In this document: positions 39,412-62,580 of the stretch, piece by piece
How positions within the stretch are numbered: position 1 is the first letter of the stretch
How the letters are laid out: each line of letters opens with the position of its first letter
Assembly (NCBI RefSeq): GCF_033153115.1
Contig: NW_026889765.1
Coordinates: 10,478,001-10,542,000 of the forward strand
Reading direction: 5' to 3'
Length of the DNA: 64,000 nt
From: Saccostrea echinata
Taxonomy: Eukaryota
Notes under the pieces: generated by a model
Databases searched by the model: none
Told to the model about the DNA's origin: nothing
What the model saw: the letters and a program-made list of their open reading frames with translations, nothing else
Position numbers and translations under genes: made by a program

Positions 39412-39775
39412 GGAACCAAAGAGGGGACACCCGAGCTCCTTTCCTGTAAATAGTTGTTTGGCTTTTAATTTATAATTTTTCTTCTTTCGTCGATAGGGGT
39501 GGGAGGGGGTGGAGAAATTTTCCAGGATGTGGGCCTCGGAGACAGATCTGAGGCGAGCATTGCTGACAAAATTTAACTATTCAAAAACATTCATGTCTTT
39601 CGGAACTTTCGGACCTTTAAATACCCATTCCGTCAGTAATCAGGAATGGGTATTTCTTTGAACACCCATCCCGTCAGTAATCAGGGATGGGGGTTCGTAT
39701 TCAAATATTCTAAATTGTAAATGAAACATCCATTTAGAGATGTCCGAAAGCTCCGTTGTCCTCTCTTTTCAAAAG
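39412..39775 (+). other. Conserved structured 3'UTR element of stathmin-like copy 1
   Basis: Conserved in all three paralogs, with a long-range closing helix and twin hairpins (see findings). Confidence 0.7.
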
Positions 39776-40402
39776 TTTTAAAATGTTAATTAGTTTAATA
39801 TTTAATAAAGTACAAAGTGCCGGTATGTGCAGATACTGTAAATGTGTTGTGTTTTCTTCATTTAACTGTTTTACCATTTTCACGATATCAAGTTTTGTGT
39901 GGAGTTAATTATAAAACCTGGACATTGTAAAGGTACGTATACAGATAAGCCAGCCACACTTTTAACAAAAGAAACCTATAACTGTGGTACAATTAAGATT
40001 AGCCACCTCGATCTTTGCTTTAATGGCGTACGCGTGGCCGAATATTGTGTGTGTGTAGGTGTGTGTGTGTTTAATTGGGGGGGGGGGGGGGTCGGACAAG
40101 TTTAAAAGAAAAAGTTGAATATAAGGGACACTTTAAATCCCACGATGGGTTCAGAGTTAAATTCGCTGATGGAAGAACAACCATTAAAGCTTATCGTTCT
40201 TTCCAAAGGATTTTATATTAACCTTTGCTATTCCCCATGTCTTGCTTTTATGAAATTAAAATTGAAAGTAATTGTTAAAAAAAAGTTATTTGTCTGAACA
40301 AGGAACTAAAAAAAGAAATGAATTCTGGCCTCTCACTACTGAAAACTAATTATTAATCTGCTTAAAATGACTTTTTCCTGGGTATAGACCGGTGACTTTT
40401 TC

Positions 40403-43400
40403 ATGGGTATAGAGCGGTCTTTAGCTTGTTCACTTCCTACAGTACAACACAAAAATGTATACCGTCAGATGGCAACTAATCAAGTAGACTCGAGTCCGCA
40501 AAGAGGAAAGGTGGATGTACGTAGACTGATTGATGTGCCTGGACTGGAGGGGAAACATAATGATGTTATCGTATGTCCGTCATTAGAGATCACAGGCCAA
40601 GAGAAACAACATGTTATATTTTTTGGAGGAGATGTGCAGGTAAGCCATGGCTCGAATTTCCTCGACAATTCTTACCAACAAAATTAGCAAAAATCAAACC
40701 AAAACGAGGGGGGGGGGGAGCGAAACCGACACAAGATGTGAAACCAATGGGAGGTTTTGCTGATGCGCTAACACGGAATTCGGAGAAGGTGCGGGAGGGG
40801 GCGTCAACTCCTCGCTGTCAACGGTAGTGGTACCTCCCCCAAGAAATTTTTGAAAAACCCATATTATTACGCAATTTAAATCTGAGCATTAGCAACATAT
40901 TTTATTTATAGCATGAAATTGAATGAAACAGAATTAGTTTAAACGTCACTCTTTCAACACCCTTATTTTGAATTTAAAATTATATCTAAAAAAATTTAAA
41001 ACAAAGTTTACCTGCATGTTTACATTTCATCTGGAATAAAACATGTTCGCTCAGAAAATATGGGTTTTGAGTTACTGTCCTTCCTCAAAACAAATGACAC
41101 CACTATCTCCTAAACTTTATTATAATGTATAAAATATATACTCATTTAGAGTTAGATTGGAACTGAAACCACAGGCATCTTAATTTTAATCATCAAGTAG
41201 CAAACCCCCATGCGCGGATCTAGAGAAGGGGGGTGTCGGGGGGGGGGTCTGCCTCCCTCCTGGATTTGTAGAGTTATTAAATGTATATACTAAAGCAAAT
41301 AAAAAATGATTTGGACCCCCCCCCCCAAAAAAAAATGTGAACCACCACCACCACGAAATAGTTTTTTCATGATTGGGAATGGTCCTTACCTTTTTTTTTT
41401 CTTGTCAAGAAATTTCTGGATTGAAAACTTTTTGACTGGGGTGGAACCTCCCTCCGGAAAAATTTCCTACTATAGAATGAAAAATCCTACCCCCTCTAAA
41501 TATAAATACATGATATGCATTCTATTGTCCAGAATGTTAATATGCCAACGTTGTTTTACACTGATTAGATCATTATTACATTTTTTTGTGACCGAGGCCT
41601 CCTCACAGCTGCTTGTGGNNNNNNNNNNNNNNNNNNNNNNNNNNNNNNNNNNNNNNNNNNNNNNNNNNNNNNNNNNNNNNNNNNNNNNNNNNNNNNNNNN
41701 NNNNNNNNNNNNNNNNNNNNNNNNNNNNNNNNNNNNNNNNNNNNNNNNNNNNNNNNTTTAAAGTTTTCTTTCATATTAAATTGTTCTTCTCTAGCTTTTA
41801 TAATTTTTTCTTCTTGCAAGCATATAAAATGTGTTCGGTATGACACCCCCACCCCACCCCCAAGAATTAAGTGAAAAATTAATAAAGTAGAATGAACGTT
41901 TCATTTAACATTAAAAATCATACTTGCCTCATCATATACAATATTTTATGATTTCAAGAGGCCCATGGCCACAACTCTCACCTGAGAAACTCGAGTCCTG
42001 TTGTTCCTTCCAATTTTATCGTAAGATTTTTCTCCTTTATATTCCTAGGAAAAAAATTTGATCCCATGTCATGGCCCAAACTGAAACTCCAAGGGGTCTC
42101 TGAACACAGAACATAGAGATGCTCAATATGACTAACTTGGCCTTGTAATTATGGAGAATAATTTTTTTTTTGTTTTCGGCTTTGGTCGATCTTATTTGAT
42201 TCCATATGAGACACCCGGCAAATGTAACTGCGTGCACAATACAAGACGAATAACAATAACTTTGTTTAATATGAGGGTTCCTGTTATTCCTGTTATTAGC
42301 GAAAATATCAATGCGATCATGATGTTGCATATTTTTATGTAATTCACTTTCTCCTTGAGAAATCTTTAGAACGAGGTAAGAAGTTTGTAAAAATCACTGT
42401 CTACACAGTTTGGCGTTCAGATATGGAAACAATGTGAAATTCATGGGAGCAGTGTCCAGGCGATAAGAGGGGTATTGCAGTGGTAAACAAGAGGCCCATG
42501 GGCCACAACGCACACTTGAGTTACTTTAGCCCTGTAGTCTTCAGAAAATTTTAAGGAAATTTATATTCCTTGAAAAATTACGACCCTACCTTAACTCTCA
42601 GGGGTCTCAGTATCAATATGACTTACATGGCCTTGCAGTTATCGAGATTTAAATTCTTTTCCTGTATACATACATTATGTAAAAATCGATCCTGATTTTA
42701 GCCAACTCTAACCTTTCGTCCATAATTTAGAAAAAAAAAATTAAATTTACATGAGATTTTACTTTCGTTACTTAAGCATGGGATACAGATTTCCAGATTT
42801 TATAAGTTACTGCATGAAATCTATTAAGTACAGTTCTCGGACAAGTTTCCTTTCTGCATGCATTGAGTGTGACATGCACCCTCCTCCCACAGGCACTTGG
42901 GGAATGGACCCCCCTTTCCAATTTTTTTTCTTTTTAAACCTGGGATCAAGTCACCTTTTTCCTATTTTTGTATTCTAATATGCACTATATGTTATCGATA
43001 ATGTAACCCTTTTGTCTCTATAAGCTGTTTTTATAAATATATCGTTTTCGACTGATACATAAAAAGAGAGAAGCTTTCTCTCCTTTAAAAAAATCTAATA
43101 TAGTTTTTGATAGACACGATTTTAGCAAGAGTTATTTTCCATTGGTCGCCATATGCATATTGGAGGTATAGAAGCCTGAATTCCTTCATTATTCAACCAA
43201 TTTAAACTTGTCATACTGAGCAATTGGGTAAAGATAACACAATTTTTCTTAAAATTATTGTACATAATTTTGCAAAACATATTGTTTGTTTAATTTGATA
43301 GTTTATGTATTTGTATTGTGTATTTAAATGATAGTTCATTCCTTTTGATTAAAGATTTAATTACCCCCCCCCCCCCAAAAAAAAAAAAAACATCAACCCA

Positions 43401-61485: not shown

Positions 61486-62117
61486 ATGGGTCTCCTTCAG
61501 AGCTGTTTTGCTAGAAAAAACAAAGTGGGTGTCGCAAAAGAAGAGATGGAGGCGTACGAGAAAGTACGGAAAACAATGGTCACAGAGGAAGTGACAGAAA
61601 GGAAAGGTGGTGTGGCCTTTGATCTTACATTTGTCTCTGAGGAAACTCCAAAGATGCCTCCACCAAGATTGCTTGAAAATAAAAAGGAGGATTTTGAAAA
61701 ATGGAGAGGTATATTTATACTATTCATTAATGTTATGCTTTCAAACACGCTTTTTTGCTTAAATTACACTAAAGCAGGTAATGCTACTGGTTTGCCTAAA
61801 TATGATCATACAAGGAAACAAGAAATAATCCCCCCCTTCAAACTTGTCTTCCTGGATACCAGTGATTAGTAAGGTTAAGGCCCCATTGTTCATGTTGGTT
61901 AAATTTGCCAGCAGTCCTTACCATTATACATGTGTCTTTCAAAAATCAATAAACATTTCCCTGTTTATATTTTACAGAGTCTCAAGAGAAGGCACAAGCC
62001 GAAAAACAGGAGCGGGCTCAACAGAACAGAGAGGAAGCCCGTATCCAGAAAGAGATCGATGTCGCCCACAAGGAGATGGAGAGGCTCGAAAAATACGTCA
62101 ACCTTACTGCAGAATAA
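61486..62117 (+). CDS. Small N-acylated stathmin-like protein, copy 3 (~120 aa)
   Basis: Exons 61486-61708 and 61978-62117; AATAAA at 62609. Confidence 0.75.
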
Positions 62118-62196
62118 AAATACTTTAAGCTCCTGATAATTTCACTGTTAACGATCTGGACAATTTATTTTGAAATTTTTAATTTTCAAAACGATT

Positions 62197-62580
62197 GGAA
62201 CCAAAGAGGGAACACCCGAGCTCTTTTGCTGCAAATCTTTGTTTTGGCTATTAATTGATTTTCTTTCTTTTTTAGGCTCATACATTTTTTTTTTTTGGGA
62301 GGGGTGGAGGTGGAATTTGAATTTCCAAAATGTTGGCCTCGGAGACAGATCTGAAGCGCTAGCATGGCGGACAAAATTCAGCTTTTCAAAAATTTTCACA
62401 TCTTTCGGAACTTTCGGTTCTTTAAATACCCATTCCGTCAGTAATCAGGAATGGGTATTTCCTTGGAACACCCATCCCGTCAGTGATCAGGGATGGGGGT
62501 TCCATGTCAAAAGATCTAAATTGTAAATGAAACATCCATTTAGAGGTGTCCAATAGCTCCGTTGTTCTCTCTTTTCAAAA
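62197..62580 (+). other. Conserved structured 3'UTR element of stathmin-like copy 3
   Basis: Homologous to 39412-39775, with a compensatory change in the closing helix. Confidence 0.7.

Follow-up and report, generated by a model that had tools for sequence, protein, structure and literature searches.

A large RNA structure, probably under selection, in the 3' untranslated regions of an oyster gene family

The 3' untranslated regions (3'UTRs) of three small genes from the oyster Saccostrea echinata contain an element of roughly 360 nucleotides (nt) that we judge to be, with good probability, a selected, cis-acting RNA structure of the messenger RNA (mRNA). The genes lie in a stretch of 64,000 nt (NCBI RefSeq assembly GCF_033153115.1, contig NW_026889765.1, positions 10,478,001 to 10,542,000 of the forward strand), which was analysed as a whole and is referred to here as the window; positions are counted from its first letter. 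An earlier note, made from the letters of the window, had proposed that three stathmin-like paralogs share a structured and selected 3'UTR RNA domain. In the analysis presented here, the domain is supported by base pairs that are kept through two-sided changes in a far larger alignment, it has a low copy number in the genome, and it is included in mRNA. The proposed relationship to stathmin fared less well.

The window holds three two-exon genes, at 38.6-39.8 kb (forward strand), 56.2-55.0 kb (reverse strand) and 61.4-62.6 kb (forward strand), with introns of 255-350 nt. Exon 2 encodes a 46-residue charged, helix-like tail with the C-terminus ...EKYVNLTA(K/E). In a three-way alignment, identity begins exactly at the splice acceptor of the last exon, continues through the coding end, falls in a spacer of ~77 nt after the stop codon, returns sharply at TTGGAACCAAAGAGG and stops at CTCTCTTTTCAAAA. 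These borders refine the limits given in the earlier note for the three copies of the element, which we call copies 1-3. The copies are ~81-83% identical to one another, and the introns and flanks are at the random level. An AATAAA starts 29-36 nt past the end of the element in all three. A BLAST search with the spacer of copy 1 (39335..39411) returned copy 1 itself and one weak match only.

We searched the window's own 923-Mb assembly for further copies; loci and contigs are referred to by our own L and C numbers. With copy 1 as the query, 53 matches were obtained on four contigs, and 16 of these were close to full length. The 3' arm of the element, searched as a 25-nt pattern, matched 36 times, a low copy number, and the reversed control did not match at all. 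The loci recovered by four element queries (copy 1 and three divergent copies) overlap largely, each query adding only a few, and our lower-bound tally is ~50 loci on at least 12 contigs. The three paralogs of the earlier note stand for the window, while genome-wide they belong to a much larger set with several subfamilies. Some loci on different contigs (L019/L020, L031/L032, L027/L028 and L034/L035; C62 or C16 vs C54) are 93-99.4% identical over 3 kb including flanks, and C14:7.20 Mb and C64:7.90 Mb were paired on identical protein-match scores alone, not on a DNA comparison. Such pairs may be uncollapsed haplotigs or recent segmental duplications, in which case the locus count is inflated by a few.

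Most of these elements sit behind the same kind of gene. A protein search of the genome, with exon pieces and database proteins as queries, found 21 full-length exon-1 matches and 22 exon-2 matches, and the element lies in sense orientation in 19 of the 21 full-length genes of this two-exon family of ~120-amino-acid (aa) MGxxQSC proteins. Among the first 30 loci, 25 have a same-orientation BLAST or TBLASTN match to the family's first or last exon just upstream (two of the 25, L018 and L029, are overlapping fetches of one place), and at ~28 loci the element occupies the same place and orientation relative to the last exon. The distance from stop codon to element is ~57-80 nt in the 17 type A and B genes measured, and 15 of 19 scored type A and B copies have an AATAAA 14-35 nt behind the element.

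The loci were sorted into types. Type A, the window's kind, begins MGLLQSCF and has 17 loci; type B begins MGIFQSCL and comprises L021, L022, L030 and a remnant, L046. The element is also found in the 3'UTRs of a cluster on contig C25 (MGLF[QH]SCMRKNK; L039 and L050-L052) and of one gene of a long subfamily of ~163 aa (L048). A nucleotide profile built from alignment A3 detected these subfamilies, with which protein identity is only ~30-40%, at nhmmer E values of 1.2e-51 (L039), 6.4e-53 (L050) and 2.3e-22 (L048), and gave no match in 38 kb of unrelated window sequence. In types C and D (8 loci each), the element lies behind a splice acceptor in a terminal exon with few codons before the stop.

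To compare the element with the DNA duplicated alongside it, identity was calculated as matches over the longer sequence in global alignments, and medians for 14 type A genes (91 pairs) were set against shuffled controls (Table 1). The earlier observation that introns and flanks cannot be aligned holds across all of these paralogs. Between types A and B, identity is 0.70 for the element and 0.72 and 0.75 for the exons, with all other regions at the control level. The element has been kept about as well as the coding sequence while co-duplicated DNA has decayed to noise, which argues for selection rather than recent copying.

Table 1. Median pairwise identity by gene region among type A genes, with shuffled controls
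Region	Type A	Control
Upstream	0.60	0.60
Promoter-proximal 100 nt	0.74	0.59
Exon 1	0.86	0.59
Intron	0.56	0.54
Exon 2	0.91	0.61
Spacer	0.70	0.61
Element	0.83	0.57
First 45 nt downstream	0.67	0.62
Next 300 nt downstream	0.61	0.58

The minimum-free-energy fold of copy 1 has an energy of -126.3 kcal/mol (z = -5.57), and none of 100 shuffles folded as well. Its complementary ends, recognised in the earlier note, form a closing helix (P1) of 12 + 1 + 5 pairs between segments ~310 nt apart (Table 2). When 33 full-length copies were folded singly, z was below -2 in 31 (a rough figure, from 15 mononucleotide shuffles each), and at least 12 of the 18 P1 pairs were present in the minimum-energy fold of 27. 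RNAalifold gave 72 pairs for 15 type A copies, which vary little, and only 2 of these pairs had changed on both sides. For a more diverse set of 13 copies (57-97% alike; L040 and copies of types B, C and D), the consensus had 63 pairs; 20 of these had changed on both sides, and 93.6% of cells pair. Shuffles of the 13-copy alignment produced 11.4 +/- 2.1 such pairs (0 of 500 reached 20), and sliding the partners by 1-3 columns left 37-48% of cells paired and 0-7 double-change pairs.

A similar picture was obtained across types. In alignment A5, which contains the 33 full-length copies, we counted only the helices common to all types (P1, P2, the P5 outer stem and P6; 43 pairs). Of the cells at these positions, 93.0% are paired, and 17 pairs have changed on both sides, compared to 10.1 +/- 2.1 in shuffles (1 of 500 as high) and 3-12 in slid controls; the corresponding number of double-change cells is 55, against 3-18 when slid. 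The two-sided changes are spread over the four helices: 4 of 18 pairs in P1 (96.3% of cells paired), 4 of 12 in P2 (86.8%), 5 of 8 in the P5 outer stem (97.6%) and 4 of 5 in P6 (90-91%). Those in P1 are at alignment positions 7:531, 9:529, 14:524 and 15:523, and consist of A-U to C-G in 4 copies, A-U to G-C in 6, G-C to A-U in 4 and G-C to A-U in 5, with G·U intermediates at these positions in other copies. The G-C to A-U replacement reported earlier for copy 3 (GGGACA/TGTCCT to GGAACA/TGTTCT) was seen again. The prediction of P1 used only copy 1, so that the other types provide an out-of-sample test of this helix.

The mismatches at paired columns indicate which strand folds. Cells with G·U outnumber those with A·C by 86 to 6 in type A and by 99 to 14 in the other types, as expected if the sense RNA folds. 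Choosing the fold on the sense strand biases this count to some extent, although the size of the asymmetry still points to the mRNA strand. In agreement, alifold energies are lower for sense than for antisense (-73.9 vs -65.3 and -63.5 vs -49.1), and column-shuffled alignments reach only -15.6 and -2.5.

Sharp borders and complementary ends would also be expected if a miniature inverted-repeat transposable element (MITE) or other mobile cassette had inserted into an ancestral 3'UTR or were spreading as a terminal-exon unit, with the ends as terminal inverted repeats and the conservation as a product of recent copying. With 3 mismatches over ~20 nt, the complementarity of the ends is equally what an RNA closing helix would show. 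About 20 loci, a group that the earlier note did not foresee, carry the element although no family coding sequence can be recognised within 1-10 kb; they are the type C and D loci, L040 and the fragments L017 and L031/L032. Some units share only ~150 nt upstream of the element (L024 vs L033), and internally deleted copies that keep both ends (L034/L035, 208-210 nt; L046) look like transposon deletion derivatives. However, ~50 loci in 923 Mb are few for a mobile element, and the fixed place and orientation at ~28 loci form a pattern of duplication, not insertion. The copies are old (57-70% identity between types) yet far better kept than the introns and flanks copied with them, and it is not the ends alone but also the internal helices that covary. 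Mismatches that are G·U on the gene's sense strand, rather than A·C, are not expected of inverted repeats acting at the DNA level. It should also be noted that, by eye, no target-site duplication was seen at the borders of copies 1-3. We consider a mobile origin of this kind very unlikely.

Expression was assessed with contigs from four runs of one study, which are labelled 'RNA?' (a guess) and hold 21-28% of words; they were mapped on 38400-40400 at 90% likeness. Contig depth is limited to 38735-38935 and 39137-39806. It is close to 0 in the intron, is 0 in both flanks, and ends in the 39740-39806 bin with 0 beyond. A spliced joint connects 38916 to 39193, where loose contig ends carry the end of exon 1 (…AAATGGAG). 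In all four runs, contigs of 345-347 nt with 2-5 differences span from the coding region (39298/39299) to a point inside the element (39643), and further contigs cover 39639-39774. Other loose ends match the type B long hairpin and the type C P2 hairpin. The exon-only coverage and the splice joint indicate that this material is spliced RNA and that the element is part of the transcript. An assembly gap at 41619-41756 lies 1.8 kb past the AATAAA of copy 1; as none of the features described here and no mapped contig extends there, continuity across it is irrelevant to the finding.

These contigs also bear on whether the conserved unit might be the precursor of a separate non-coding RNA cut from the 3'UTR, or a DNA-level or antisense feature. 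At type C and D loci the fold is kept with a last exon of only a few codons, so the RNA may matter alone; the antisense strand also folds well (z = -4.67, and the alifold energies given above); and the contigs reveal neither the ends nor the strand of the RNA. Nevertheless, unbroken contigs run from the coding end into the element in every run, and both the G·U asymmetry and the lower energies of the sense fold point to the sense strand. The hairpin stems, at 8-13 pairs, are too short for a microRNA precursor. A scan of 901 bases around copy 1 against Rfam 15, on both strands and with E values up to 10, found nothing at the gathering threshold, which agrees with the earlier failure to recognise an RNA family; the best of nine sub-gathering matches was snR75, with 22.6 bits against a threshold of 40. 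A separate RNA or an antisense feature therefore appears highly improbable. We also rejected a conserved open reading frame (ORF) inside the element, because the copies have indels that alter their length and because their longest run free of stop codons ranges from 47 to 123 codons.

Gene conversion, in which concerted evolution among paralogs rather than selection on the fold keeps the copies similar, is the most improbable explanation of all: many paralogs are clustered (contig C16 at 10.0-11.3 Mb and C1 at 17.04-17.16 Mb), with elements 90-96% alike within clusters and last coding exons 88-99% identical among type A copies, but conversion tracts would need to skip the intron and the 77-nt spacer, both of them near the shuffled level, the element is common to at least 12 contigs and to subfamilies with ~30-40% protein likeness, and conversion yields neither two-sided pair changes nor a G·U bias.

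Selection on an RNA fold thus remains the reading we prefer, and several observations weigh against it. All of the covariation comes from paralogs of one genome, so that related copies share inherited double changes and only a small number of events are independent (~4 in P1). With the exception of P1, pairs were counted in the very alignments that had yielded the RNAalifold structures, which inflates the counts, though the slid controls are far lower. For type A, RNAalifold prefers a UCUAAAU/AUUUAGA pairing over P6. The RNA origin of the 'RNA?' contigs is read from their exon-only coverage and splice joint, and abundance, like ends and strand, is not readable from them. Two pseudogene-like loci, L015 and L047, still retain much of the element. 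Conversely, an intact family gene, L045, has no recognisable element; L046 is a ~110-nt remnant in which ~85 nt of the 5' part are joined to a degenerate 3' arm; and L016 has lost its 3' arm. At least some copies can therefore dispense with the element.

Two of the altered loci have further peculiarities. L045 looks like a natural knockout of the element: its 3'UTR has an unrelated insertion instead (L045:1100-1560; G000:C54:26998100-26998560), with long perfect inverted repeats, GTTGGACCCCTGACCAATTTCATTCGATATTCTACGGG and its complement, ~250 nt apart, and its stop codon overlaps an AATAAA (TGAATAAA). At L018 (L018:1481-2511; G000:C1:17114860-17115770), a ~600-nt insertion with a long (TA)n run interrupts a type A element, pieces of which occur in duplicate to the left and right of the insertion; exon 2 is the only detectable part of the gene.

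Within P1, the consensus folds contain a series of smaller helices (Table 2). A second helix, UUUGG paired with CCAAA, lies inside P1 in type A. The P2 hairpin depends on the type, being CCUCGGAG...UCUGAGG or GGCAACAGAGC...GCUCUGUUGCU, and is different and longer in type C. It is followed in types B to E, but not in type A, by a long hairpin, UCUGGUAAC...GUUACCAGA. The conserved run CUUUCGGAACUUUCGG comes next, before P5. P5 consists of CAGGGAAC...GUUCCCUG around CCCAUUCC...GGAAUGGG; types B to E have a single hairpin here, whereas type A has two in tandem, the second of which is enclosed by the GAAC/GUUC outer stem. The loops of these twin hairpins read GUCAGUAAUCA or GUCAGUGAUCA. Downstream of P5 is AAAUUGUAAAU, which is unpaired in the consensus of types B to E. 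In type A, an alternative to P6 pairs UGU and AUUUAGA. Both internal hairpins described in the earlier note, CCTCGGA...TCTGAGG and ACATC...GATGT (GGTGT), are present.

Several short motifs are conserved in sequence, namely UUUGGC, CUUUCGGAACUUUCGG, UGUAAAU and the P6 loop CAUUUAGA. Most are unpaired in the consensus folds, the exceptions being a small P4 helix that takes up part of CUUUCGGAACUUUCGG and, in type A, the UUUGG/CCAAA pairing and the alternative to P6. UGUAAAU may be a Pumilio-like core. The core UGUA[ACU]AU (UGUAAAU) occurs in the last 115 nt of 29 of the 33 copies, compared to 0.036 per copy expected from shuffles, and the full Pumilio-type 8-mer UGUA[ACU]AUA (UGUANAUA) occurs in 7 of the 33. 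Copies 1 and 3, together with their nearest relatives, hold a G-rich tract (GGGGTGGGAGGGGGTGG and variants, up to ~40 nt) in the variable 5' third of the element (window 39496-39516; equivalent site in L002-L006), where copy 2 and the C1 cluster have T-runs instead. This tract could be a quadruplex-forming insert or merely a slippage-prone spacer.

Table 2. Positions of gene and element features in the window
Feature	Position	Strand	Remarks
Conserved promoter/5'UTR block, copy 1	from ~38618 (38618-38961)	+	common to the other two window paralogs
Exon 1 coding, copy 1	38714..38939	+	MGLLQSCF..., 75 codons + 1 nt, then GTAAGT donor
Exon 2 coding, copy 1	39195..39334	+	...EKYVNLTAK, stop 39332-39334; spliced joint 38916->39193
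3'UTR spacer, stop codon to element, copy 1	39335..39411	+	poorly conserved
Element copy 1, type A, 363 nt	39412..39774	+	from alignment, fold and transcript contigs
P1 5' arm	39418..39437	+	AAAGAGGGGACA-C-C-C-GAGCU
P2 domain	39517..39575	+	AUGU/GCAU stem bearing the CCUCGGA-GACAGA-UCUGAGG hairpin (39534-39553)
Twin hairpins, type A	39619..39697	+	CCCAUUCC/GGAAUGGG and CCCAUCCC/GGGAUGGG, same 11-nt loop GUCAGUAAUCA
UGUAAAU motif	39716..39722	+	between P5 and P6; unpaired in the consensus of types B to E, paired in that of type A
P6 hairpin	39726..39743	+	ACAUC-CAUUUAGA-GAUGU; GGUGU (G·U wobble) in copies 2 and 3
P1 3' arm	39749..39768	+	AGCUC-C-G-U-UGUCCUCUCUUU
Poly(A) signal AATAAA, copy 1	39804..39809	+	starts 30 nt (offset 29) past the element
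Element copy 2, 366 nt	55007..55372	-	gene exon 1 56162-55940, exon 2 coding 55592-55453
Element copy 3, 384 nt	62197..62580	+	gene exon 1 61486-61708, exon 2 coding 61978-62117; A-U replacement in P1

Upstream of the coding regions, the conserved block of copy 1 includes a palindrome resembling a cAMP response element (CRE), TGACGTCA, at 38640-38660, ~60 nt before the start codon. Tandem repeats occupy 37253-38283 and 60372-60922, with units of ~147 nt and ~105 nt according to self-BLAST offsets, and lie ~0.3-0.5 kb upstream of the promoter blocks of copies 1 and 3.

The protein encoded by the copy 2 gene is already in the databases as an uncharacterised protein of S. echinata (P0002). In word-indexed and profile searches, the named family matches were, with one exception, from oysters (S. 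echinata, S. cucullata, Magallana gigas, M. angulata, Crassostrea virginica and Ostrea edulis), all 'uncharacterized' and none with a Pfam domain. A profile search of 1.84 billion representatives gave 51 matches at E values up to 0.001, and the only non-oyster named match was a weak one, to a 2067-aa protein of the spider Trichonephila clavipes (E 2.9e-4). The N-terminal MG...C suggests that the proteins may be myristoylated and palmitoylated.

The earlier note had regarded the host protein as stathmin-like and probably tubulin-binding, and our data do not support this. The Pfam stathmin family PF00836 had no match among 2 exon pieces, 4 full-length oyster proteins and 10 distant relatives, and a PDB search with a 12-member family profile found no stathmin chain at E values up to 10. 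In a language-model feature search, 25 of 30 matches fell in clusters with a minority of PF00836 members (11-17% in the two listed), with scores of ~0.91, and the peptide KKGGVAFDL resembles the N-terminal hairpin of stathmin. We treat a relationship to stathmin as a lead only.

To estimate the age of the element, exon-1 peptides and database proteins were placed in one tree, in which the long and short subfamilies form separate clades, each with 100/100 support and each with Magallana, Ostrea and Saccostrea members. This is the only well-supported split in the tree, whose backbone had no resolution for dating the separation of types A and B. Since both clades span the three genera and both carry the element in the S. 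echinata genome, the simplest inference is that the element is older than the split of Magallana, Ostrea and Saccostrea. Scans with the element pattern gave 0 and 4 matches in two metagenome scans and 0 in bacterial and archaeal genome contigs and in viral sequences. The 4 metagenome matches were rejected as chance, as they lie on G+C-rich bacterial contigs and lack the 3' arm.

The ~16 type C and D loci keep the element, with compensatory changes and transcription, where family coding sequence is undetectable. Neither their flanks nor, at six loci, the 10 kb upstream gave a coding exon in a search with a hidden Markov model of the family (best E 1.8). Conserved ORF pieces are found 2-3 kb upstream of type C elements (L056:6950-7630, reverse strand; L058:6080-7490; L059:6550-7100), including QEDEEFRVRQDDRRYGIFQSDSEWG..., the Cys-rich basic KYYCCCQCFRRKRT and an E/K-rich stretch ending KRVGVCFNL, and at type D loci there are exons resembling MRRFLMCLCCCIG as well as E/K-rich ORFs with VGVSFN at the end. 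The likeness of these pieces to the family is at the level of motifs (VGVCFNL vs GGVAFDL, Cys-rich basic stretches, ENEENQKF), leads without statistical support; they may be very diverged relatives with lipid-anchor motifs. At L033, an upstream gene with fibronectin-like repeats and a transmembrane helix (…ILIIAICAAALLLIIILVVGCIIYNKRK…; L033:825-2010, G000:C29:23658500-23659700) ends ~600 nt before the type C unit, and the two could be neighbours or a single transcript.

Taken with the conservation and covariation data, we propose the following model. A structured 3'UTR domain of ~310-420 nt has been inherited by duplication within an oyster-specific family of small genes for proteins of ~120 to ~165 aa with an N-terminal MGxxQSC, and is maintained by purifying selection on the sense-strand RNA fold. 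P1 may bring the stop-codon side and the poly(A)-signal side of the 3'UTR together, and the fold as a whole may act as a platform that displays motifs and loops to RNA-binding proteins. Such a platform near the poly(A) signal could control translation or mRNA stability, which we tentatively favour as the most likely output of the element. Localisation of the mRNA comes second and, on this model, seems somewhat unlikely; the earlier note's suggestion of localisation or delayed translation is a reasonable guess. A further suggestion, which we regard as unlikely, is that what these loci conserve most strongly as a functional unit is the RNA domain rather than the protein, and that this domain is a portable 'terminal-exon RNA module' older than the split of the oyster genera. 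If this were true, an autonomous large fold would give any transcript that carries it a common fate, such as a shared localisation or storage particle.

We know of few large covariation-supported RNA structures in animal 3'UTRs and of almost none from molluscs. Full-text literature searches, whose coverage excludes subscription journals, returned no description of the element or of the protein family. The S. echinata genome offers a natural experiment, with ~50 paralogous copies of 57-99% identity that include deletion derivatives and a gene that has lost the element. It also provides a defined element for studies of post-transcriptional control in oysters, a group of aquaculture and developmental models with many localised maternal mRNAs. 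In addition, the finding flags an uncharacterised, oyster-restricted family of small proteins with a probable lipid anchor, and the element is a candidate new Rfam family once orthologs are added.

Structured 3'UTR domains that govern localisation or translation include those of bicoid, the stem-loops of oskar and the translational control element of nanos. Like these, the oyster element appears to be a cis-acting domain of several helices and tens to hundreds of nt, in which the fold matters more than the sequence and loops or motifs would be offered to proteins. Molluscs have many localised embryonic mRNAs, and 3'UTR elements of the snail Ilyanassa reportedly direct mRNAs to centrosomes, which makes localisation domains a natural analogy. 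Unlike the bicoid, oskar and nanos domains, the oyster element is common to a family of ~50 loci rather than belonging to a single gene. It matches them neither in sequence nor by covariance model, and the Smaug motif CNGG is not found in the twin loops GUCAGUAAUCA and GUCAGUGAUCA.

The histone mRNA 3' stem-loop is comparable as a conserved RNA structure at the 3' end of the transcripts of a multi-copy family, near the 3'-processing site, where it presumably allows common post-transcriptional control, as the oyster element might. However, the histone structure is a single hairpin of ~26 nt that replaces polyadenylation, whereas the oyster element has ~360 nt and several helices and is followed by AATAAA in most copies. 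Long-range duplexes in 3'UTRs can be bound by Staufen, as at the ARF1 site, or shorten the effective 3'UTR. P1 resembles these as a long-range duplex that would place the stop-codon side next to the poly(A)-signal side, but it is interrupted and short for a Staufen site, and the conserved interior suggests that the element may be more than a simple clamp. Bivalve genomes also contain MITEs such as the Pearl elements of oysters, which resemble the element in length (a few hundred nt), in their sharp borders and complementary ends, and in having deletion derivatives. The element differs from them in its low copy number, in its constant place and orientation within a gene family, in being far better conserved than its flanks, and in its internal covariation and G·U strand bias. 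Structured cis-acting 3'UTR elements are thus a known kind; the oyster element family is a new and unusually large member of that kind, common to a gene family and its degenerate relatives.

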